A DNA stretch of 64,000 bases from Rebecca billardiae RCC1528 (taxonomy: Eukaryota > Protista > Haptophyta). The DNA lies in assembly GCA_965240325.2 (NCBI GenBank), contig OZ251226.1:1798001-1862000 (forward strand), in the 5' to 3' direction. Both the position numbers and the translations under genes were made by a program. Numbering within the stretch: position 1 is the first letter of the stretch; every line of letters begins with the position of its first letter. Below the pieces are notes generated by a model. It was given only the letters and a program-made list of their open reading frames with translations, was not told the origin of the DNA and did no database searches. Positions 8,058 through 51,589 of the stretch are shown piece after piece.

Positions 8058-8615
8058 GGCCTCATAGCTGTTTTCGACCCAAAACAATCAAACGTCGCTC
8101 GGCAAACTCGTACTCCAGCAATCCAGCATACAAGAATGACAAAAATACTCACTTGTTTCACCCCCGGGGTATCTGATCCCACGTCCGCCCATCGACTTAT
8201 GCGGAATGGCGTGGGCGCGCTTATTTCGTCAAGCGCGTAGTTGCTAATGCAGAGCACTATGGGCCAACGTACCCCTCGAAAAAGCGAAAACTCACCCTCC
8301 AACACCCCTCAAAATCGTCCCCCGTCCCCTTTTCTTTGATCAAAAGATCTTTTTGACAACGTAGTGAGGGCCCCCGGCGGGGCTCCACGCTAAGCGCTCC
8401 GCCCTACACCGCGGGCCATAAAGTTCTCCGCGTATTCATTCATACTACAATCATACGGGCGGCGGCGCCGACTGCTAAATCACTAAATGTATATTATATT
8501 ATTATTATTGTCGTCGTTATATTACGTCAATCACCGTTATTATTAGTACTATATTGGGCTAAGCTGCGCGTGGAATCCGACGCGTCGCGTCGTCGGTTGT
8601 CGACGGTAACATATA

Positions 8616-38198: not shown

Positions 38199-40202
38199 AT
38201 GCTCGTCAAGGCGGTGGAGCCCGGCAGCACGACCTTCCTGCAGTCGATCGGCTGCCTGTGGGTGGCCGTCGGGCTGACGATCTCGCTGCAGGCCGTCGGC
38301 GTGCCGCCCTTCATCGCGCTCCTCGCCTCGCTCCCGCTCTGGGCCACATGGGTGTACATCTCCATCCCGCTGAGCGTGATGGTGACCAACCTGATGTACC
38401 TGTGCGTCGACCTCTTCTTCCGCGACATCACGAGCCGGAACACGTTCAAGGTGCCGACCAAGGCCCCCGTCCTCTTCGTCTGCGCGCCGCACTCCAACCA
38501 GCTGCTCGACCCCATCGTCGTGATGCGCACGTGCCCGCGGCGCGCGGGCTTCCTCTGCGCGTCCAAGACGATGCGCATGCGCGTCGCGGGCGCGATCGCG
38601 AAGGCGCTCGACTCGATCCCGGTCGAGCGCGCGCAGGACCTGAAGCGCACGGGCCCGGGCTCGCTCGAGCTGCGCGACGGCCTCGCGCTGGGCACGGGCA
38701 CGCGCTTCCGCGCGGACGTGCAGCCGCGCGATCGGCTCGAGGTGGGCGGCCACGAGTACGTGGTCGTGGAGGTGGTGTCGGACACGGAGGCGCGCGTGCG
38801 CCCGGCGAGCGCGAGGCCGGGCGACGCCGTCGCCGAGCCGCCCCCGCCCGCGTGCCCGCCCTCCCCGTACGTCCTCGTGCCGCACGTCGACTCCACGTCG
38901 CTGTATGAGAACGTGTTCGAGCGGCTCGGCGCGTCCGAGTGCGTCGGCATCTTCCCGGAGGGCGGCTCGCACGACCGGACGGAGCTGCTGCCGCTCAAGA
39001 TGGGCGTGTCGATCATGGCGCTCGGCGCCGCGTCGCGCTTCCCCGGCGTCCCGCTGCGCATCGTCCCCGTCGGCCTGCACTACTTCAAGGGCCACCGCTT
39101 CCGAGGCTCAGTACTGGTCGACTATGGCGAGCCGTTTGCCGTGCCGCCCGAGCTGATCGTGCAGTACGAGGCGGGCGGCGTGGAGATGCAGGCGGCGTGC
39201 CAGCGGCTGCTCGAGGTGGTGCACCAGGCCATGTCGTCCGTCACCATCTCCGCCCCCGACTACGGCACCCTCGAGCTCTTCTGGATGATGCGCCGGCTGC
39301 ACCAGCAGAAGACCGTCGAGGAGACCGGCCAGCGGCCGACGCTCGAGCAGCAGGTCGCGCTCACCAAGGCGTTCTCCGAGGGGTACGACCGGCTGCGCGA
39401 CCGGCCGGGGACGGTGCGGCTGCAGGAGCTCGTCGCGACGTACAACACGCAGCTCCGCCTCTTCGGCCTCAAGGACTACCACGTCGAGGCCGGCACGCAC
39501 CTCCGGCGGCGCACGCTCGCGCGCGCCGCGCTGCTCTCGATCCGGATGCTCTTCAACGGCCTCGTCGCGTTCCCCGGACTGTGCCTCGGGCTGCCGCTGC
39601 TCGTCGCGACGCGCGTGGTCTCGTCGCGCGAGCGGCGCAAGGCGCTCAAGTCGTCCACCGTCAAGATCCACGCGCGCGACGTCATCGCCACGTACAAAAT
39701 ACTCATCTCGCTCGTGATGACGCCGCTGCTGCACGTGATCTACACGTCTCTCGCGTGGTACCTGCACTCGCAGGCGGCGGCGGTGTGCTACTTCTTCTTC
39801 TCGCCGTTCGTGTGCTGGGGCGCGGTGCGCTGCGCCGAGTCGTCGCGGCTGGCGTACCGCGAGGCGTGGGCCACGCTCTCCGCCGTCGTGCTCCCGAGCG
39901 GCCGCGTCAAGCTGCGCGAGCTCAGGCAGGAGGTGAAGGCGGGAGTGCTCTCGCTCGTCGACGACATGGGCGGCCCGCGCGCGGGCGCGGCCGCGGCCGC
40001 GGCGGAGGCGAGCGTCGCCGCGAGCCACTCCGAGCCGCCCGAGCAGTGGGCGGAGCTGTGCGAGACGCTGCGGGCCGAGTCGCTGCGCCAGCGCCGCTCG
40101 GCCGTCTCCGAGCGCGAGGCCAGGGCCGCTGTGGCCAAGCAGGCCTCGGGCGGCAGCGACCTGAGCGAGCTGCGCGAGATCACCGCGCAGCACCAGTTTT
40201 GA
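38199..40202 (+). CDS. Glycerol-3-phosphate/DHAP acyltransferase (Sct1/Gpt2 type)
   Basis: APHSNQLLDP (HX4D), IPVERAQD, IFPEGGSHDRTELLPLK, IVPVGLHYF..HRFR, C-terminal TMs. Confidence 0.9.
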   Translation: MLVKAVEPGSTTFLQSIGCLWVAVGLTISLQAVGVPPFIALLASLPLWATWVYISIPLSVMVTNLMYLCVDLFFRDITSRNTFKVPTKAPVLFVCAPHSNQLLDPIVVMRTCPRRAGFLCASKTMRMRVAGAIAKALDSIPVERAQDLKRTGPGSLELRDGLALGTGTRFRADVQPRDRLEVGGHEYVVVEVVSDTEARVRPASARPGDAVAEPPPPACPPSPYVLVPHVDSTSLYENVFERLGASECVGIFPEGGSHDRTELLPLKMGVSIMALGAASRFPGVPLRIVPVGLHYFKGHRFRGSVLVDYGEPFAVPPELIVQYEAGGVEMQAACQRLLEVVHQAMSSVTISAPDYGTLELFWMMRRLHQQKTVEETGQRPTLEQQVALTKAFSEGYDRLRDRPGTVRLQELVATYNTQLRLFGLKDYHVEAGTHLRRRTLARAALLSIRMLFNGLVAFPGLCLGLPLLVATRVVSSRERRKALKSSTVKIHARDVIATYKILISLVMTPLLHVIYTSLAWYLHSQAAAVCYFFFSPFVCWGAVRCAESSRLAYREAWATLSAVVLPSGRVKLRELRQEVKAGVLSLVDDMGGPRAGAAAAAAEASVAASHSEPPEQWAELCETLRAESLRQRRSAVSEREARAAVAKQASGGSDLSELREITAQHQF

Positions 40203-40520
40203 TACGACGAATGATCACGTCTGATAATGTGGACGTTCTGCGCGGTCGGCACTGGTAGAATGATGATGCTCGACCGTCGGTCGAGGTGATCACGAATGTC
40301 AGGCGACGATACTGGCGGGAGATGCCAGGCGGATGCGCGTCACGCATCCCTCCCCCGCCAGGCTAAAAGTGCGGCCGGTTCCGGACCGGAATGACCATCC
40401 CGGACGGGATAGATCATAGATGACGAAATCTGAACCAGGAGGAGTGGGCGGACGGTCGGAAGCCCCGCGGACGCGACCGCCGATCGTCGCCTCCTCGCCG
40501 ATCGGCGCCCAGACCGCCCG

Positions 40521-42719
40521 ATGAGCATACAATTGGCGAGGCGCAGCGCGCGCGTCGAGAGCGACGTCGCTCGCTTCCCGCCCTTTGCAAAGCTCGATCT
40601 CGCGCACGCGCCACCGACGAAGGTCGAGGGCAAGCCGCGAGAGAACGTGGCCGAGCGCGACGCGCGTATGTGCTGCTTTGCGGCTCGTGACGTTGACGCT
40701 GGCCGACTCCGGCACCTGTACGACAGCCTGCTGCAGCCCGCGGTGCCAACGCTGATCTCGCATCCGGAGCCGACTCGCGCGCCCCTTCTTGTGTCTCTCG
40801 ACCCGCAAGGCACCCTGCGCGCCGCGCTCGATGCGGCACTCGCAGCGCGCGATGCTCGCGAGCTGTGGACGCTGTGCGAGCACGCGCAGCTCGCGTACGA
40901 CAGGCGCATCGTGCACGTGGATACCGAGTACACGAGCTGGTGGCTCTCGAGCTCGCCCATGCGCGAGGGCGGCGTGGCGGAGGTGCTCGACCGGTCTCGC
41001 GCAGACGCGGCGCCGCTCGACCTCGACGGCGCGAGTGGCGCCGCGCGGAAGAAGCGACGCAGCGCCGCGGCGGCTGTGGCGACGGTCAAGGAGGAGGAGG
41101 AGGAGCCGTCCGCCATGGCCAAGCGCAAGCGACGCGCCTCGGCCGCCGCGCGACTCGACGTCGACACGCCGCCTGCGGTCGAGGCACCGCCCGCAGCTGC
41201 CGTCCCGCCCAGATCAGGCGGGAAGCAGGCGGAGGCGGCACAGCAGCCCGCCCGGGCGCGCGCGGCAACGCCGACCGAGACGGCGGCTGCGCCACAGCGC
41301 GACGCGGCGAGGGTGGCCGAGCCGACGGTCGCGGTCAGCTCGAAGGCTGAGCGGAAACGCGAGGAGGAGATGGCGGCAAAGGCACTCGCTCTGGCGGAGG
41401 CGCACACTGCGCGCTTGCGGGAGGAGTTCTCTCAGGCGGCGGACGCAGAGATCTCGCTCAAGCGAGGGACTAGCAGACACGAAAGGGCGGACGCAAAGTT
41501 GACACGCAAGCTCAAGGAATCGGAACAGGCGAGAGATCCCGAGGCAGAAGCAGCCGCGCACCACCATGCACCTCTGCTCAGGCACCTGTCCCACGCCGCG
41601 TGGCGCCGCGCGCGGGAGCTTGGCGCTGAGCTGCCCGCGTGGGCGTCATTTCTGCGAGCCGACGTGCCAGCGGTGGAGGAGCAGGGCGCAGCCACGTCGC
41701 TCGCGCGCGGGCCGTCCCTCATGGCGGAGCTCGAGGCGGAGATCGAGCACTTCGCCGACAAGTTCCGCACTCCTCGGCTCAGCCTGCGTGCGTTGGAGAC
41801 TGGCGGGATGGGGTCTGCGCTGTGTGAGGCGGCTGCTGCACTCTGCGCGCTGCTTGCCGCCGAGCAGCTGCCCGCTGACGAGCGCCGCGAGCTCATAGCC
41901 GTCGTCGTGAAGCTCGCCGTACCTCTGAAATATGAGATGTCAGTCTTGCACGACATCGATTTCCCCGGCAGCATCGACTCGAGAAATAGGAGCCGAGATC
42001 GCGGTACCGACGTCGGTGCAGCACAGCTCGTGCGAGCGATGCGCGGCTGCTGCCTGGCGCTCAAGTGCTGTGTGTTCTGCGGCGAGATGAAGTGGCTCGG
42101 CAAGGCGCACGCAGGTGCTGCTGCCTCGCTCACACGCATCGCACGCAACGCAGGCGCTGCGCGCTGGGCGATGGGATCGGCTGCGTACGCCCTCGAAGAA
42201 ATCTCGTGCGTTTTCACCAGCTACTGGAGGTGTATGGACTTGATGGACCAATACTACGAGCCCACGTCCAAGCGCGGCGATCAATCGTCATGGAGCTTTG
42301 ATGACCATCCAGAGAGCGTCGTGGGGCATGCGCTTGCGGCGCTATGCGTCCTGTTCACGGATGAGGACGCGCCACTGGTGGAACGCGTCGCGGCTGCGGA
42401 GGCTGCCGGCATGCACTTGCCAAGACACTTGCTCAGCGACGACATTCGTGAGCGTGTCCTCGACGGTGGAGACCTGATTGAGGAAAGCGAACTCGACGAT
42501 CTTGACTTTGTGCTGACGAGGTGGGAGCACGCACGGGGTGACGCTGAGGAGCTTGCTCGCGAACTCGATCTCGCTCGCAAAGCCTTCAGGGCCAGAGGCA
42601 CGAGCGCCGCCAAGAGCGCGGCTCTACCGCCAATTGAATTGTGCAAAGCTGCGTCAAGCCTTCTCTTCCGTCTTGACACGGCAAGGCGCGTTCTCTCGCG
42701 GGAACATGATGATGAATAA
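40521..42719 (+). CDS. Hypothetical protein, paralog A (helical C-terminal domain)
   Basis: Intact 732-aa ORF; duplicate at 46246-48531. Confidence 0.7.
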   Translation: MSIQLARRSARVESDVARFPPFAKLDLAHAPPTKVEGKPRENVAERDARMCCFAARDVDAGRLRHLYDSLLQPAVPTLISHPEPTRAPLLVSLDPQGTLRAALDAALAARDARELWTLCEHAQLAYDRRIVHVDTEYTSWWLSSSPMREGGVAEVLDRSRADAAPLDLDGASGAARKKRRSAAAAVATVKEEEEEPSAMAKRKRRASAAARLDVDTPPAVEAPPAAAVPPRSGGKQAEAAQQPARARAATPTETAAAPQRDAARVAEPTVAVSSKAERKREEEMAAKALALAEAHTARLREEFSQAADAEISLKRGTSRHERADAKLTRKLKESEQARDPEAEAAAHHHAPLLRHLSHAAWRRARELGAELPAWASFLRADVPAVEEQGAATSLARGPSLMAELEAEIEHFADKFRTPRLSLRALETGGMGSALCEAAAALCALLAAEQLPADERRELIAVVVKLAVPLKYEMSVLHDIDFPGSIDSRNRSRDRGTDVGAAQLVRAMRGCCLALKCCVFCGEMKWLGKAHAGAAASLTRIARNAGAARWAMGSAAYALEEISCVFTSYWRCMDLMDQYYEPTSKRGDQSSWSFDDHPESVVGHALAALCVLFTDEDAPLVERVAAAEAAGMHLPRHLLSDDIRERVLDGGDLIEESELDDLDFVLTRWEHARGDAEELARELDLARKAFRARGTSAAKSAALPPIELCKAASSLLFRLDTARRVLSREHDDE

Positions 42720-42798
42720 TCGTCGTCGGACGACGACGCGCGCGCGCGATATGACGACGATGATCGCGATATCGCGATTAAATAATGCTGTAGCTTAA

Positions 42799-42960
42799 TT
42801 ATGGCCCGCAGTGCAGGGCGGTCAGAGCGCGCCGCAGCGAGTTAGGTGGAGCCCGCTCCGCGGGCACTAACCACGTTTAAAAAAGATCTTTGCAGACGAC
42901 TTTGATCAAAGAAAAAAGGGACGGGGGACGATTTTCAGGGTTGGAGGAGACCGAGTTTTG
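42799..42960 (+). repeat. Transposon-terminus-like repeat, inverted homolog of 8290-8420
   Basis: Shares TTATGGCCCGCRGTGYAGGGCGG and TTTGATCAAAGAAAAARGGGACGGGGGACGATTTT with the reverse complement of 8290-8420. Confidence 0.75.
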
Positions 42961-43125
42961 AATTTTGAGACCCCCGCCTTTATAGCGCATGCGTTAGGCA
43001 CGAAATCGGATCCTAGTCATAGTGGCCGCCTAGTGAGTTAATTGACGCGGCGGCACGTCCAGGCGGCCAAACTTCATACTAGTCGTAAAGGCGCCGCCCG
43101 GTCCGGGGTCGGGGGTACCATATGA

Positions 43126-45026
43126 CAGGTGGGCCCACAGCCATTAAAAAATGAAAACACGCAATCTCTCTGGCTTTTTCGGACCGCAGCCGTGCTCTTT
43201 TCCTCGCGCTGAAGTCCCTTTTTCCAGGCCGCCGACTCCCGGTCCGGGAAGCCGATCGATCGCGAAAACGATGACCGGGATGGACCTGTGCGCGTCGTCA
43301 GCGCGTTGTCCGCCGCGCTTGCCCGCCTGCCATGCGAGGCACGCTGCGCCGCACGCCCGTGGCATGCTGCGTAGCCTTCTGGAACGAGCCATGCGAACGG
43401 TTCATGCCTGGGTCATCTTCCCGGTCTGCCATCTCTCGCCGACAGTCGCGCGTTCAAACACGGGAACAGCTTTGGGGATTGTAATGCGTGCACAACGCGA
43501 GCTTGGGACACCCGTGAACGAACTGGGACACTCCGGGACGTTACTGGGACAGCATCTGCATGGTGTCCTGGCAATGCCCAGCTACTTCTGCGGCCCTGCG
43601 GAGGCCCGCCTCGTCGGTCAGGTCCCCGGAAGTCTGTGCGGTGTGACCGAACGCTGTGGCTGTTCACACGATCGTGGGCACTTGGGGAAGGATCTGATGG
43701 TCAAACAGCGGTCAAAGCGGATGCGTGTGCCGTCTGTCACCTCCCCGGCCTCGACTCAACTCTCAGTGCCGACGCTCCTCAGGTGTTTGGAAGCTACGAG
43801 CCACTTGGAGGGCCTCGAGCCACACGATTGCACGAGGTCGGGCTGCGCGTCGAGCCGGGTAGATTGCAGCTGATGCGCTTGTTGAGCCCTGTCATGGCTC
43901 TACGCGTACCTCAAGAGCCTAGCTACTCCCCCGCGCGGCCGCACAGCAGTCGCCCCGCCTCTGCTTGGTCATCCGCTGTGCGCCGTGCTCGCTGCGGACA
44001 GTACAGTTGATCCGTTCAACAGTGATTTAAGCCCTTCGTGAGCCTGCCCGAGCACGTTGGCGGCGCCACCGACGCCGGTGCACGGTCAGCAGGCGTACCA
44101 GCTTACCAGTGAGCCATATCTTGCCCTGCTGCCACGCAGGAAGCGGTGATGAGTGCACATCGCTACGCGCGCGCACACCACGGCGAGCCAGCTCGGCGCT
44201 GCGACGAAGCGGCCGTTGCGCACAGTTAGGCAGAGGACGGTCCAGCTGAGGACAGCTCGGACACAGCTTGGTCGCAGTGTAGAGCAACGGTTAGGTCGGG
44301 GCACGAGAAAAGGCGTTCGATGCATAGCAGTGCCTGCCTTGAACGCCACAGATGAGCTCTCGACGAACCTTGTCGGCCGTGTTTACGCTGCGGGCTGCTG
44401 GATGGGCCGGTGGGCCCGGCGCCGCGTGCACCACTCCTGCTTGCCTTGACCACGGCGGGCGGGCTGGCGCCGCGACTCGGTGCGGCTCAATCTTTGCCCA
44501 CGGCTCCTTAAGACTCATCCTTCGAGGGTAGAAGGGTTGGAAAAATTCTTAGGTGTCACATGCACGCCGTACGGCTGCTACGAGAGCAGTCTGAAACAGT
44601 CTGAAATACTATGGCAGCCATGCTGATCAGCATGGCGGTGTATATGTAACGCACGGGTATAACGGTCGTTATCCCGTATTCTCAGAGTGCCCATATACGC
44701 CGTATATGTGACAATGAGTGTGCATGCTGCTGAAGACCTATGATCAGCTCATCAAAGTGCTATATCAAAGTGACGTCTGTCGACCCTATATATCACGTTT
44801 AAGACGCCCGTTACATGGTCGTTACATTGGTCACAGGCCATTTCCAATAAGTAAATAGGGTCACCGTTACGCCCTATATTTACAGCATGTACCACTGGTT
44901 TTTTTACCAGGCAGGCCAGGGGCCATCTCATGGGGCTGGAATCCAGCTCGAGACGAAAGTAAACACCGCGCTATGAGCTCGCGCTCTGCGCCACTATAAT
45001 CCCACAGTAGCCAGTGGGCCCACCTA
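43126..45026. mobile_element. Putative hAT-like non-autonomous element
   Basis: IR CAGGTGGGCCCAC / GTGGGCCCACCTA. CATATG lies on both flanks (imperfect 8-bp TSD). CGTTAC/GTAACG motifs repeat at 44640-44870. No convincing ORF. Confidence 0.45.
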
Positions 45027-45240
45027 CATATGTGGCATGTGCACCGCCAATCCCAGTGGGCTGCACTGGGCCGCCACTGTTATTGCTAGCTGTCTCAATA
45101 AAGTGCCCTTCGCATCATTCTGCCGGCCCCCACCGCCAGGCCCCACGTCGGACCTGTAAGTTACTAACTTGTTACTTGGAGCTGAACAACTGAATAACAA
45201 GTACAGTCCTTGGGCGGATCAGGATGCCACCAGCAGCACC

Positions 45241-46137
45241 TCATGCAGCCACGAACGGGTTGGTGGCGAGCCACGCGTCCAGGTCCTTGAGACCCGGAGC
45301 CAGGCGCACACCAAGCTCGCGCTTGCCGCCCGGCCCGTAGTAGGTATGCTTCATGAAGAAGTCGTACATCTCCCCGATCTCCTCAGCGCCGGGGAAGCCC
45401 TGCGCCTTGACCTGCTCGATGGTGAGCTCGTGGAAGGCGGCCTTCTTACCCGCAGCTACCATCTTGTCGACAAGCTCCTGCGGGTAGAAGTGGTCGGCCG
45501 CGCACGGCACGAGCAGACCGTCGTACTTGTGCGGGTTGGCAAAGAGTGCAGCGACGACGAGCCCCGTGTCGCTTACATCGTACGCTGTGATGGGCATGTT
45601 GGGGAACGCAAACATGGTGACTCCGTCGACCTCCCGGGAGAACATGAGCAGGTTCTGATAATAGAAGGCCGGCGATGGGAACGTGAGCGTCTCGAACTTG
45701 CTCTTGATGGACATGGCGTACTCCTGCACCTTCGCCTTGTCCGTGAAGTGAGCGACTTTGAGCGTGCCGCCACTGATCTTCTCGCAGTTCGCGAGCGAGG
45801 AGAACTGCACGTGCTTCACCCCGGCTGCGGCGGCTGCGTCGATCAGCGCCGTGCCCTGTGCGAGCTCCTTGCCCATGGACGCCGGGTCCCAGAAGTTTGT
45901 CACGATGTACGCGCCCCACGCGCCGTCAAAGACGCCGGTGCCCTTGGCAAACGTCGACGCGTCGTTCGAGTCAGCCGCGACGACTGTGACGCCGGTCTTT
46001 GCAGCTAGCTTCCGCGCCTTCTCAGTCTGGGTGTCACGCGTGACCGCGCGCACCTCGAATCCCGCGTCGACCAGCGCAGTGAGCACTGAGCCGCCCTGCG
46101 CGCCGGTCGCCCCGAAGACCGTGACCAGGTTCGGCAT
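45241..46137 (-). CDS. NmrA-family atypical SDR (NMRAL1-like)
   Basis: MPNLVTVFGATGAQGGSV, VRAVTRD, VTNFWD, QGTALIDAAAAAGVKH, HFTDKAKV, FYYQN. Confidence 0.92.
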   Translation of the reverse strand: MPNLVTVFGATGAQGGSVLTALVDAGFEVRAVTRDTQTEKARKLAAKTGVTVVAADSNDASTFAKGTGVFDGAWGAYIVTNFWDPASMGKELAQGTALIDAAAAAGVKHVQFSSLANCEKISGGTLKVAHFTDKAKVQEYAMSIKSKFETLTFPSPAFYYQNLLMFSREVDGVTMFAFPNMPITAYDVSDTGLVVAALFANPHKYDGLLVPCAADHFYPQELVDKMVAAGKKAAFHELTIEQVKAQGFPGAEEIGEMYDFFMKHTYYGPGGKRELGVRLAPGLKDLDAWLATNPFVAA

Positions 46138-46245
46138 GGTTCGGCTGTCTTGACAGTCGGCGTTCAGAATCGGGCGCAAATTTCGCTGTGATGGACGGAC
46201 GCAAGCGATCGTCGCCTCCTCGCCGATCGGCGCCCAGACCGCCCG

Positions 46246-48531
46246 ATGAGCACACAATTGGCGAGGCGCAGCGCGCGCGTCGAGAGCGACGTCGCTCGCT
46301 TCCCGCCCTTTGCAAAGCTCGATCTCGCGCACGCGCCACCGACGAAGGTCGAGGGCAAGGCGCGAGAGAACGTGGCCGAGCGCGACGCGCGTGTGTGCTG
46401 CTTTGCGGCTCGTGACGTTGACGCTGGCCGACTCCGGCACCTGTACGACAGCCTGCTGCAGCCCGCGGTGCCAACGCTGATCTCGCACACAGAGCCGACT
46501 CGCGCGCCCCCTCTCGTGTCTCTCGACCCGCAAGGCACCCTGCGCGCCGCGCTCGATGCGGCACTCGCAGCGCGCGATGCTCGCGAGCTGTGGACGCTGT
46601 GCGAGCACGCGCAGCTCGCGTACGACATGCGCATCGTGCACGTGGATACCGAGTACACGAGCTGGTGGCTCTCGAGCTCGCCCATGCGCGAGGGCGGTGT
46701 GGCGGAGGTGCTCGACCGGTCTCGCGCGGACGCGGCGCCACTCGACCTCGACGGCGCGAGTGGCGCCGCGCGGAAGAAGCGACGCAGCGCCGCGGCGGCT
46801 GTGGCGACGGTCAAGGAGGAGGAGGAGGAGCCGTCCGCCACGGCCATGCGCAAGCGACGCGCCTCCGCCGCCGCGCGACTCGACGTCGACACGCCGCCTG
46901 CGGCCGAGGCACCGCCCGCAGCTGCCGTCCCGCCCAGATCAGGTGGGAAGCAGGCGGAGGCGGCACAGCAGCCCGCCCGGGCGCGCGCGGCAACGCCGAC
47001 CACGACGGAGGCTGCACGCAAGCGCGACGCGGCGAGGGTGGCCGAGCCGACAGTCGCGGCCAGCTCGACGGCTGAGCGGAAGCGCGAGGAGGAGATGGCG
47101 GCAAAGGCACTCGCTCTGGCCGAGGCGCACACTTCGCGCTTGCGGACGGAGTTGTCTCGGGCAGAGCGCGCCGAGCGCTCGCTCGAGCGTGGGAGTAGCG
47201 GACAAAGCGCGGCCGCTACAACGAGACGCAACCTCAAGAAGAGCGTGGAGGAGGCGAAAGATGCCGAGACGGAAGCAGCCGCGCACCGACAGGCACAGTT
47301 GCTCAGGCACCTGTCCCGCGCCGCGTGGCGCCGCGCGCGGGAGCTTGGCGCTGAGCTGCCCGCGTGGGCGTCATTTCTGCGAGCCGACGTGCCAGCGGTG
47401 GAGGAGCAGGGCGCAGCCACGTCGCTCGAGCGCGGGCCGTCCCTCATGGCGGAGCTCGAGGCGGAGATCGAGCACTTCGCCGACAAGTTCCGCACTCCTC
47501 GGCTCAGCCTGCGTGCGTTGGAGACTGGCGGGATGGGGTCTGCGCTGTGTGAGGCGGCTGCTGCACTCTGCGCGCTGCTTGCCGCCGAGCAGCTGCCCCT
47601 TGACGAGCGCCGCGAGCTCATCTACGTCGTCTGGAGGCTCGCCGGACCTGCGGAACTTCAGATGGCACTGTTGCCCGACGTCTATGAGCGCAGCATCAAG
47701 TCGAGCAGAAACGGGAGAGATCTCCGTACCGACGTCGGTACCGCACAGCTCGTGCGAGCGATGCACGGCTGCTGCCTGGCCCTCACGTGCTGCGTGTTCT
47801 GCGGCGAGATGAAGTGGCTCGGCAAGACGCACGCAGGTGCTGCTGCCTCGCTCGCTCGCATCGCACGCAACGGAGGTGCTGCGCGCTGGGCGATGGGATC
47901 GGCTGCGTACGCCCTCAACGACATCTTGCTCGATGAGGACCCCAGCTACTACTCAGGGTGTATGAACTTGTTGAACAAATACTACATGCCCACGTCCAAG
48001 CGCGGCAATACATCCTCGTCATGGAGTGACCATCCAGAGAGCGTCGTGGGACATGCGCTTGAGGCGCTATGCGTCCTGTTCACGGATGAGGACGCGCCGC
48101 TGGTGGAACGCGTCGCCGCTGCGGAGGCTGCTGGCATGCACGTGCGTCGCGAGGACTGTGAGAGAGACCTCCAGGGAGGGTCGCTCACAGAACAGGAACG
48201 CGACGCTCTTTCCCTTGTGCTGACGAGGTGGGAGCACGCACGTGGTGACGCCGAGGAGCTTGCTCGCGAACTCGATCGCGCCTACAAAGCTCATCACAGG
48301 GCCAGAGGAATGAGCGCCTCAAAGAGAGCGGCGCTTCCGCCGTATGAGTTGTGCAAAGCTGCGTCGAGCCTTGTCCACCACGACGATTCCCGGGTGGGAG
48401 GGGCGGACATTTTGGAGAAGTTCGAATCGGCGGTTTCCGTCCCGATCTCTATTTCACAAAGCTACTCGCGGTACCGTCGGAGTAATGTAAGTACGTATTT
48501 CGCGCGGGTGCAAATCATTAGTGGCACTTGA
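46246..48531 (+). CDS. Hypothetical protein, paralog B
   Basis: Intact 761-aa ORF, collinear with 40521-42719. Confidence 0.7.
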   Translation: MSTQLARRSARVESDVARFPPFAKLDLAHAPPTKVEGKARENVAERDARVCCFAARDVDAGRLRHLYDSLLQPAVPTLISHTEPTRAPPLVSLDPQGTLRAALDAALAARDARELWTLCEHAQLAYDMRIVHVDTEYTSWWLSSSPMREGGVAEVLDRSRADAAPLDLDGASGAARKKRRSAAAAVATVKEEEEEPSATAMRKRRASAAARLDVDTPPAAEAPPAAAVPPRSGGKQAEAAQQPARARAATPTTTEAARKRDAARVAEPTVAASSTAERKREEEMAAKALALAEAHTSRLRTELSRAERAERSLERGSSGQSAAATTRRNLKKSVEEAKDAETEAAAHRQAQLLRHLSRAAWRRARELGAELPAWASFLRADVPAVEEQGAATSLERGPSLMAELEAEIEHFADKFRTPRLSLRALETGGMGSALCEAAAALCALLAAEQLPLDERRELIYVVWRLAGPAELQMALLPDVYERSIKSSRNGRDLRTDVGTAQLVRAMHGCCLALTCCVFCGEMKWLGKTHAGAAASLARIARNGGAARWAMGSAAYALNDILLDEDPSYYSGCMNLLNKYYMPTSKRGNTSSSWSDHPESVVGHALEALCVLFTDEDAPLVERVAAAEAAGMHVRREDCERDLQGGSLTEQERDALSLVLTRWEHARGDAEELARELDRAYKAHHRARGMSASKRAALPPYELCKAASSLVHHDDSRVGGADILEKFESAVSVPISISQSYSRYRRSNVSTYFARVQIISGT

Positions 48532-49589
48532 TGAAGTCGTTCCTTCAATTCCTCGAATCACCTCCGCCCGCCCTATTCACCTACCCCTCGACCTTCGCGT
48601 TCCACAAGGAGCGTCCCGGCAAAGGGCGCCCCGGCGCGAGAGCCGCTGCCAAAGCCTCGGTAGTCGGCGGGCAGTGGGCTGGGTCTCGGCGGACGGGTGC
48701 GAGTCGAGTCAGGGCCGCGCGGGGGCCGAACGGGCGGGGGAGAGACGCGGCGTCCATGGCGTATTCGCGTGCGCGCATGGATTGCTCGAACCGCCCGAGG
48801 TAGTGTGCGCCACATGTGCGTGCAGACGGCACGACGCCGCGCGAGTCAGCCAGACTGTGAGCTCGTGGTGCTCGCGCCACACGGCGCCCGCGCTGCCCAA
48901 GCAGTGTGCGCCGGAGGAGAAGAGGAAGCTGGCGTGGGTGTCAGAATGTACGCGCGAATGCACCGAGCCCAACGCACGCATCCGCGCACGCATCCCCTTG
49001 TCTGTGACTTTGTTCACTCCGGCGGCTCAGGCCGCCGATGCGTGCCAAGTGAGGTTGCCGTCGCTGCGCCCACATCGCAAGATCGTCTTGGTCCATCGTG
49101 CTCGCGACTACCCACTGCTTGGCCCGTGATGTAGCGTAGACGACTGCTCGCCGGCTCTGGCACTCGCCGGGTCCATGCGACGGCCGGGTGCGGCGCGCCA
49201 CGCGGCCGAGTGGACGGCCCGGGCAGCGGGGCCACGCCGGTGGCCCGCGCAGCGCTCGCGCACACCGCGTGCGTGCCGCAGCGCCGCGTACGGGCACCAC
49301 TGCGCTCGCGGCTGGGCGCAGTGCAGCTAGCGGTCTGCCTTATTCTAGCACTCGCTACACACGGCCTGCTCCCTAGACTTGATGGCATCTGAAATGGTGC
49401 TGGAAGTCGAGCGTCCACACCGGCGTGCCGGCAGACGCTCGTTGCGGTCAGGTGTTGCGCGGGCGCAAGCCGTTGGCAGCTAGAACCCAGCTGACCTCGC
49501 GGACGCTGTGTTGCTCTCGCCAGCTGCCGAGCACGTGCCCTTGCTTGATCGCCGTGAGAGACGCGATCGCGAAGAAGTCTCAGCCGGCG

Positions 49590-49945
49590 CCGCAGAGCGG
49601 CAAGCGGCACATGAGATAGGAGCTCGAGCTCGCGCAGCCAACACACTGGCGGTCCTCAGCAACGAGGCCGATGGCAGTGACGTCGAGCGCGCTGGCCTCG
49701 ACCTGGATATCGGTCCGCTTGGTCGCGTCCACGGCTCGGTAGTGCGCTGCGACGCGCGTGAGCAGCCTCCCGAAGATCGCCGCGTGCTGCTGCTCGCGGA
49801 TGTGGGGGACGGGTCACTGGGGTTGGACGGACCACAGGATCTTGCTGTACCGCGCGACGAGGGTGGGCACAGCCTCCGCCGGCGGGCGGTGCAGCTTCGC
49901 GCTGTGCTAGATGGCAACGATGGCAACGTGGTGATGTACTGATTA
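49590..49945 (-). pseudogene. Decayed coding fragment of unknown origin
   Basis: Protein-like frame (AVPTLVARYSKILWSVQPQ*PVPHIREQQHAAIFGRLLTRVAAHYRAVDATKRTDIQV) interrupted by stops. Confidence 0.3.
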
Positions 49946-50664
49946 AACTGCGAGCGCGGCAGCCCGCAGCAACGCTTGGATTCGACGCACGCCAAGCGTG
50001 TCACGCCGATGCTGCGTGGGCGTGCCGCGCGCGGCGCGCGCTGCGCCCCCGCGCCTTGCTCGGGGCAGCGGGGCTCGCGCGCCGCGCCCGGAGTTGTATA
50101 TTTATGCCTGCTGACTTGGCCTCGCCCCCGCGCGCGCCACCGCCCGCGCTGTCGCGCCGTCCGGCCCAGCACGCGCGCAGGTGATGGCGACGATCGGCCT
50201 GCCGCACAACGTCCAGTTCTACAAGTCGCAGGGCACACGGTACGATGGCTTCCGCGAGGCGTTGCTAACGGGCCGCGACGTGTTCGTGCAGTACGTGATG
50301 CCGTGGGTCAGACATCCGCAGAGCTGGGTGTCGGTCGGCTGCAGCACCGTGCGCGACGTCGAGTGTGTGTGTGCTCGGGCACATCAAGGCCTGCGGTGCG
50401 CGCGCGCTGCAGCCGTGCCACCGGCCCCGCGCGCGCCCGCCATGCGGGCGGTGTGGGCGGTGTGTGCGCCTGCCCTGCGCCGCGCCGCTCGCCCCGCCGC
50501 CTTCTCTCCAACCGCCGCCTGACGTTGAGGCAGCTCCCGCCCTGATCCTCCCCTCCCTCCCCGAGCCTCCTTCCGCCGCCCGGGCCGGGGGCCCCCGGGG
50601 CGCGGCCGATCGAGAACTGGGCAGGCAGATTGAAAGGCGGCTTGTTCAAGCCGCTGGAGTTGTA

Positions 50665-51283
50665 TTGATGGTGCAAGAAAACCTAGAGCCCCGGCCCAGC
50701 GCGGGAAGCGGCGACACCGCCCTGCGGCGTGGTTCGCCCCGCGCTTGTGGGGGCTAGCGGCTTGCGCATCGCCATCGGAGGAAGTTCTTGGCGCCTGTGG
50801 GATGCTCGTGAAGTGCGTTTGCCCGCGCGAGCACGCGAGGGGTGCATTCCTCTCGCTCGCCTCGCGCCGGCGCGCGTGCGTGCGCTCGTTCGGAACAGCA
50901 TGTTGAACCCCGCGATCACGACCGCGTGAAGCCCACGCACGTGACATTGTGCCGGATGACAGGGCGCCTGGGGCCGGGCAAGTATACTACGGATGCATAC
51001 GTCGGGATGACATCGTATGCCACCCTCGCTAGTGCACCGAATGCCCCTGATGTGCTGTCCCGCGTGCATCACGACCGTCCGCGTGCCGTCGTCGAGAGTG
51101 ACCCACCCAACTTCAGACTGCAATATTAGGTCCCAGGGTGATGCTCAGGTCCCCGGGGGTGTTGGGCCTGTATCATGGTGTCAGGGAGACCCAGAATGAC
51201 TTATTCGCCGGATGGCCATCATACCGCTGAGACCTAATATACCCGTGTAACGGTCGGGGCTCTAGGTTTTCTTGCACCATCAA
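50665..51283. mobile_element. Tc1/mariner-type MITE (619 bp)
   Basis: Perfect 29-bp TIR TTGATGGTGCAAGAAAACCTAGAGCCCCG / CGGGGCTCTAGGTTTTCTTGCACCATCAA. TA TSD at 50663-64 and 51284-85. Confidence 0.9.
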
Positions 51284-51589
51284 TATCCTACCAAAGGAGC
51301 CGCCTCTTTAACAATCGGGTTGTTTAGGGTTCAGGCTGGTGCCTTTTAAATGCGGGTACGGACAGTCGTTTGAGATTCTCACGAAAATGACCGCCGTCCC
51401 CGTGGGGGAATCGTCGTGGTGTTTCGTCTTGACGAGGCAAGGGACATTCTCTCGCAAGAATATGACGACTCGTCAGCTACCGTTGATGACGATGATTAAT
51501 ATGTAACAGTCGTCGTATCAACAGCAGCAGCGCACAGACATCTATCACTACCGTACTGACACTCTGAGCAGACTTTGACTAGAGTCGAC

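Follow-up and report, generated by a model that had tools for sequence, protein, structure and literature searches.

The window that we analysed is a 64,000-nucleotide (nt) stretch of GC-rich eukaryotic DNA (GC 0.57–0.77) from the haptophyte Rebecca billardiae RCC1528 (contig OZ251226.1, positions 1,798,001 to 1,862,000 of the forward strand), part of contig C8 in an assembly of 72 Mb and 41 contigs. It contains two long plus-strand open reading frames (ORFs), at 40521–42719 and 46246–48531, which a preliminary description made from the sequence alone had reported as an intact pair of paralogs with a near-identical scaffold and periodic hypervariable patches. Both ORFs are present at these positions. 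The paralogy is real, but the two are not just a pair: a further full-length copy and a partial one lie elsewhere in the genome, and we refer to the four as copies A, B (those in the window), C and D. Their coding sequences are mosaics of nearly identical tracts and strongly diverged patches, a pattern that probably reflects gene conversion acting alongside fast-evolving loops.

Copy A (40521–42719, plus strand) is an intact coding sequence of 732 amino acids (aa) with the ancestral C-terminus. Its start and end are those of P0001, a 764-aa full-length homolog from another organism, found in a Logan assembly, that is 49% identical to the family protein and has the same block structure. Copy B as read (46246–48531, plus strand) spans 761 aa and is 82% identical to A in protein sequence. 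At the DNA level the homology runs from 40481 to 42665 in A and from 46206 to 48375 in B (89.5% identity), beginning in both cases 40 nt before the ATG and so agreeing with the earlier view that the duplication starts just 5′ of it. Those 40 nt (40481–40520, plus strand) form a leader common to all copies; it is identical at 40 of 40 positions between A and B and marks the 5′ limit of their homology. The near-identity of the long tracts does include silent sites (41580–41870 holds 2–3 differences), the three variable peptide pairs quoted in the preliminary description are exact, and the divergent block that it placed at about 41410–41560 is present too. A and B are separated by eight indels, each a multiple of three in length, in line with the in-frame indels that it had noted. 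The GC content is higher at third than at second codon positions (GC3 and GC2, respectively: 0.76 vs 0.53 in A; 0.76–0.77 and 0.53–0.55 over both ORFs). We regard both ORFs as real coding sequence because of the P0001 homolog, the excess of GC3 over GC2, and a ratio of nonsynonymous to synonymous substitution rates (dN/dS) of 0.37–0.62 in the conserved tracts; these points, together with the coinciding start and end of P0001 and the in-frame indels, also led us to reject the idea that they are spurious frames in GC-rich DNA. An origin by retrocopying was rejected as well, because neither 3′ end retains a trace of poly(A), and the sharp, gene-sized limits of the homology are better explained by the limits of conversion together with a transposon insertion.

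That insertion affects copy B, for which the description of both ORFs as intact does not hold. Codons 1–710 of B occupy 46246–48375 (plus strand), which is 2130 nt or exactly 710 codons, and the frame is then interrupted by a 3046-nt element at 48376–51421 (no strand assigned). The element is bounded by 43-nt inverted repeat arms (48376–48418 and 51379–51421; the ends read CACCACGACGAT...ATCGTCGTGGTG). On its far side lies the displaced tail of B (51422–51499, plus strand), comprising the last 25 codons plus the stop in frame with codon 710. Directly adjoining the right end of the element, 51422–51468 matches the last 47 coding nt of A (42666–42712) at 79% without indels, and the tail reads FRLDEARDIL...DDDD-stop where A reads FRLDTARRVL...DDE-stop. 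This match beyond the element's right end and the in-frame continuation imply that the last 51 codons of the apparent 761-aa ORF are read-through into the element. We also considered whether the element could be a spliceosomal intron, but its ends are CACCAC...GTGGTG, not GT...AG.

The element is a repeated transposon, with a canonical form of 2425 nt and at least 12 copies in the genome at 98–100% identity (at loci including L008 and L010–L019), all of which share identical ends. None of 12 insertions has a target-site duplication; an inverted-repeat transposon without one is unusual. Its ORFs have no Pfam domain, and no transposase was found that way. The transposon looks currently active, and because the one inserted in B matches others at 100% identity, the disruption of B must be very recent. 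The insertion provides a dated event as well as a C-terminal truncation allele of natural origin. Nested within it, at 50665–51283 (no strand assigned), is a 619-nt miniature inverted-repeat transposable element (MITE) whose inverted ends measure 30–34 nt and which has a TA on either flank, a sequence with many genomic copies at 91–100% identity.

Copy C lies on the same contig, 280 kb away, and is 86% identical, with one frame kept over 714 codons. Two stop codons interrupt it, at positions 667 and 710 of the codon count and thus both within the last 7% of the gene, and there is no frameshift in the 710–717 codons of B or C. We asked whether the transposon also sits at the equivalent site of C and rejected this: the 3′ flank of C is essentially unique DNA that matches neither the transposon in B nor the tails of A and B. 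Partial copy D (L027:1726–4116, minus strand, on contig C37) consists of the first 282 family codons followed by an RCC1-repeat gene, all in one open frame of 797 codons. The RCC1 part matches PF00415 (E = 6e-62) and gives a weak, sub-threshold F-box-like match (E = 0.0038). D differs from A, B and C by a synonymous rate (dS) of 0.08–0.13, with dN/dS of 0.45–0.7. It may represent a gene of chimeric make-up, or else an insertion that by accident landed in frame 5′ of the RCC1 gene's own ATG. A DNA search of the genome returned only A–D and two weak matches, and thus no further copy from which the patches could have been donated; the distant paralogs that share the C-terminal domain are only 25–30% identical. 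A, B, C and the partial D make up a small, lineage-restricted gene family, and one that is turning over: B is split by a transposon, C carries two stops and D looks chimeric. The possibility that A and B are two haplotypes misassembled in tandem is ruled out by their unlike flanks, by an oxidoreductase gene and repeats between them (described below), by the presence of the transposon in B only, and by the third copy 280 kb off.

We compared the three full-length sequences, A, B and C, and delimited patches by nucleotide variability among them, a choice that does not bias the dN/dS ratio. The patches fall at aa 303–352, 460–502 (P1; 41898–42026), 556–602 (P2; 42186–42326), 631–674 (P3; 42411–42542) and 683–715 (P4), all on the plus strand, and at these positions they are not periodic, contrary to the preliminary description. 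By maximum likelihood, dS is 0.05–0.08 and dN/dS 0.37–0.47 in the conserved tracts, as against dS of 0.41–0.64 and dN/dS of 0.87–1.18 in P1, P2 and P3 combined. NG86 estimates agree, giving ranges over the methods of 0.3–0.65 for patch dS and 0.37–0.62 for conserved-tract dN/dS. Silent divergence in the patches exceeds that of the conserved tracts by a factor of 5–10. The same contrast is seen in raw counts: A and B differ at 22 of 83 synonymous sites in the patches and at 16 of 350 in the conserved tracts (Fisher p = 2.5e-8), and codons that specify the same amino acid differ silently in 18–32% of cases in P1+P2+P3 and in 3.4–5.6% in the conserved tracts (p about 2e-6 to 4e-5).

The site patterns in the three-copy comparison are also clustered along the alignment: they form 160 runs, where 219.6 ± 8.4 would be expected, and the longest run is 32 sites (both p < 1e-4, 10,000 permutations). 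From 41400 to 41560, B and C agree and A differs, and at about 41690–41800 there is a run unique to C. The first of these corresponds to the block labelled coiled-coil in the preliminary description (41427–41576, plus strand), which holds 32 consecutive sites unique to A and in which dS is 0.41 between A and B but 0.07 between B and C, with dN/dS of about 0.85–1. Upstream of the leader, the flanks of A and B are at the random level, and those of A and C are about 60% identical with indels, right beside coding sequence that is about 95% identical. Finally, the conserved tracts have a GC content of 0.72 (GC3 0.81) and the patches one of 0.57–0.60 (GC3 0.68–0.71), as expected if conversion is GC-biased.

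Taken together, the heterogeneity of silent rates, the clustering of site patterns and the nearly unalignable flanks form the pattern expected under concerted evolution by gene conversion, and the involvement of conversion, which the preliminary description had offered as one of two drivers, is supported by the first two. Tandem multigene families that evolve in concert through ectopic gene conversion while retaining unconverted, divergent islands are a known phenomenon. The present family resembles them in its nearby paralogs, its mosaic patterns, its low-dS shared tracts beside diverged islands, its diverged flanks and the higher GC of its homogenised tracts; it differs in that the protein family is undescribed, there are only 3–4 copies, and functional selection of the islands finds no support. 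In the scenario that we favour, the duplicates would be fairly old, given the silent divergence of about 0.3–0.6 in patches and tail and the almost unalignable flanks. Repeated intrachromosomal conversion would have made about 70% of the coding sequence uniform again, leaving a dS of about 0.05 there, with the homogenised blocks under purifying selection (dN/dS about 0.4–0.5), and the linker patches would have escaped homogenisation and drifted in a near-neutral, loop-like manner with in-frame indels. If so, the evolutionary pattern is an ordinary one of concerted evolution, fast-evolving loops and gene turnover, and its value lies mostly in being a clean worked example from a poorly studied algal lineage.

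The putative loop nature of the patches is suggested both by homologs and by structure prediction. In P0001 and four distant paralogs, the equivalents of P1–P3 are unalignable, indel-rich linkers: P0001 has insertions of 12–15 aa relative to A, B and C, the site of P1 carries an indel of at least 15 aa among homologs, and P2 varies and contains indels when the distant paralogs are compared. AlphaFold2 models of the full-length protein (from 4 sequences) and of aa 350–732 (from 7 sequences) are both all-helical, with predicted local distance difference test (pLDDT) scores of only 39.9 and 42.6, and in them the patches overlap predicted loops of 10–19 residues and the adjacent helix ends. The patches thus appear to behave as fast-evolving loops.

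Several observations weigh against conversion plus loop drift as a full account. P1 has the highest amino-acid divergence of all and yet a near-background silent divergence, which being old and unconverted would not by itself predict. Substitutions in the patches comprise 49 transitions and 99 transversions, compared with 21 and 14 in the conserved tracts, and this excess of transversions hints at misalignment or at some other process, be it of mutation or of selection. D has a dS of only 0.08–0.13 even though its contig is a different one, implying either that D arose recently as a secondary copy or that the whole family is younger than we suppose. The survival of patches of about 130 nt between frequently converted tracts may need selection against homogenisation. 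The scenario also rests on three full-length sequences from one genome and on low-confidence models.

The strongest competitor is diversifying selection, under which the patches would be ligand-contact loops kept different by positive selection and conversion would homogenise the scaffold only. We consider it unlikely, and conceivable for P1 only. P1 (dN/dS of 1.1–3.7 by most methods) is the only patch with a ratio above 1, reaching 2.3–3.7 between A and B and 2.4–3.3 or more between B and C, and few of its same-amino-acid codons carry silent differences (1 of 18, 3 of 16 and 1 of 11, the background level); however, the best p value is 0.012, uncorrected and over 42 codons, and its silent rate has a confidence interval wide enough to take in the level of the other patches. 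Elsewhere the ratios are about 1 (P2), below 1 (P3, 0.15–0.98 with dS of at least 0.7) or again below 1 (P4), and the pooled value for P1+P2+P3 is 0.87–1.2. Positive selection as the general driver, the other half of the preliminary proposal, therefore largely falls by a standard that the description itself had set, namely patch ratios at or below 1. Moreover, truly silent sites have also diverged strongly in P2, P3, P4 and the coiled-coil block, which selection on amino acids does not explain. The persistence of short patches amid converted tracts, the mutual difference of all three copies in P1–P3, the restriction to in-frame indels and the pairing of the family's N-terminal module with leucine-rich repeat (LRR) and ARM recognition repeats in other proteins would all suit diversifying selection, but the patches coincide with the indel-prone linkers of distant homologs, and of the three full-length copies only A is undamaged.

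Nor does anything in the domains, the genomic context or the literature link the family to immunity or virus recognition, so that the suggested identity as an immune or variable-recognition receptor is not upheld. A and B have no NB-ARC, TIR, LRR or similar domain (no Pfam family at E ≤ 0.1). Mutagenesis of the type produced by diversity-generating retroelements, which would give adenine-specific differences between a template and a variable repeat, was considered and rejected on the grounds that the patches contain substitutions of all six classes and that no two of the three copies are alike; no search for a reverse transcriptase was made.

It is also conceivable, though we think improbable, that no conversion is needed and that the copies are simply young duplicates (true dS about 0.05–0.1) with a locally raised mutation rate in the patches, possibly from indel-associated error-prone repair or from replication slippage in the lower-GC linker DNA. 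The low dS of D on its separate contig (about 0.1 from the others), the confinement of all indels to patches with a transversion-rich spectrum, and the lower GC of the patches are in keeping with this. Yet hotspots alone would not produce the long single-pattern runs (B = C at 41400–41560 and the C-unique run at about 41690–41800), which need exchange of tracts, and young duplicates should have similar flanks, when in fact identity is about 50–60% right up to position −40. The 47-nt tail of B, 21% diverged without indels, is likewise hard to reconcile with such youth. Equally doubtful is birth-and-death decay, in which only A would be functional and B and C would be young, neutrally drifting pseudogenes whose patches mark the weakest constraint: the transposon in B, the two stops in C, a patch dN/dS of about 1 and the lack of any A/B/C protein in a collection that does hold other proteins of the species (see below) would fit, but the conserved-tract dN/dS is 0.37–0.62 in all three pairs, B–C included, the frames of B and C are free of frameshifts, the disruption of B is very recent by the identity of its transposon, and both stops in C fall at the very end of the gene.

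As for the proteins themselves, the suspicion that the family was undescribed proved justified. A, B and P0001 have no match in Pfam, and nothing significant emerged when profiles were searched against PDB sequences. Among 5.8 billion proteins a word-based search detected P0001 alone, and a complete search of 1.84 billion representative proteins with a HMMER profile yielded 10 relatives, of which seven share only the N-terminal ~170 aa and two others only the C-terminal ~230 aa. The predicted architecture consists of an N-terminal module (the N-module), a basic/acidic linker with KKRR and KRKRR runs that resemble nuclear localisation signals, a long coiled-coil-like helix, and a C-terminal domain (the C-domain). 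The N-module (40521–41060, plus strand; ~170 aa) has the core motif LR.AL..A...DARELWTLC and occurs at 7 loci of the genome as well as in the relatives P0002–P0007 and P0009. The C-domain (42006–42716, plus strand; ~230 aa) is predicted to be all-helical, with 5–6 conserved blocks joined by variable linkers. It is found in A, B, C and the four distant paralogs (L030, L034, L035 and L036/L037); A aligns with L030, L034, L035 and L037 at 25–30% identity and with 26 invariant columns. Judging by these comparisons, both appear to be new protein modules with a narrow distribution, the named relatives all being Pavlovales haptophytes.

No product or fragment of A, B or C was found in a collection of 15 billion proteins, though two relatives from the same species, P0002 and P0008, are there; the absence from Logan could reflect either assembly collapse at paralogs or poor expression or coverage. 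P0002 (by eye identical to the L005 ORF) and P0008 (99.8% identical to the L030 ORF) are both present in Logan assemblies. The four distant paralogs (L030:1543–3414, plus strand; L034:1348–3834, L035:1387–3270 and L037:7–2562, all minus) form a second subfamily that shares only the C-terminal domain with A, and they are 43–57% identical to P0008, the L030 product. All have a conserved N-terminal TPDL(V/A)AAI...L motif that by eye is F-box-like. An F-box in this P0008-type subfamily (the TPDLVAAILRHLP motif) was nevertheless rejected, as Pfam gave no support for it even at E up to 5. On another contig (C17), L029:1595–5833 (minus strand) is an open frame of 1413 codons in which a diverged copy of the N-module core precedes low-complexity sequence rich in Q/P and in Ala; it has no Pfam match.

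The company that the N-module keeps may hint at function. In two proteins of Pavlovales sp. CCMP2436, KAJ1616399.1 (P0003) and KAJ1616763.1 (P0006, annotated as an armadillo-type protein), the module is 31–36% identical, including an LDxxGxLRxA motif and the DARELWTLC core, but the C-terminal part consists of LRR (PF13516; P0003) or ARM (PF00514; P0006) repeats instead of the C-domain of A, B and C. The family's all-helical prediction is shared with the ARM/HEAT/TPR alpha-solenoids, and its nearest ESM-feature clusters (SYO1-TPR, HEATR5A, RTP1, BAF250_C, UNC45 and ZER1 types) are of those kinds, at scores of at most 0.90, where chance matches are common, so that these are leads only and the helical solenoid of the preliminary description is no more than a candidate fold; unlike the alpha-solenoids, the family has neither a Pfam repeat match nor a PDB sequence match. 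The combination of a small N-terminal module with interchangeable domains (LRR, ARM, the C-domain and, in D, RCC1) also recalls F-box-type adaptor families. The likeness is architectural only: A, B and the N-module show no F-box, BTB or SOCS-box signature, and the F-box families PF00646 and PF12937 are absent from A, B and the P0008-type paralogs alike.

The recurrence of the N-module with LRR, ARM and other interaction domains makes it a candidate lineage-specific adaptor domain, and as such it deserves structural and interaction work. From these domain combinations, our guess is that the proteins might be nuclear scaffolds or adaptors in which docking to common machinery would fall to the N-module and partner binding to the C-domain. 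A bolder combination, that the N-module is a pavlovophyte-specific adaptor linking interchangeable recognition domains (the C-domain, LRR or ARM) to shared machinery and that within A, B and C P1 is a specificity loop kept diverse by selection against homogenisation, seems to us rather unlikely; if true, it would amount to a new lineage-specific variable-recognition system.

The TE-like (transposable element-like) elements reported between A and B are represented by a 1.9-kb repeat at about 43127–45027 (no strand assigned), with at least 30 copies at 90–98% identity among those listed in the genome and 1265 candidates at first look. It has no Pfam match, and no transposase was found in it. A shorter repeat at 42795–42975 is common to 8287–8421 of the window and to the 3′ flank of C. 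The oxidoreductase gene between the copies (45241–46152, minus strand) encodes an NmrA-like protein (PF05368, E = 6e-53) and lies head to head with B; the two start codons are 93 nt apart, an arrangement suggestive of one bidirectional promoter serving both genes. A 667-aa acyltransferase ORF (38199–40202) with a GC3 of 0.98 lies upstream of A.

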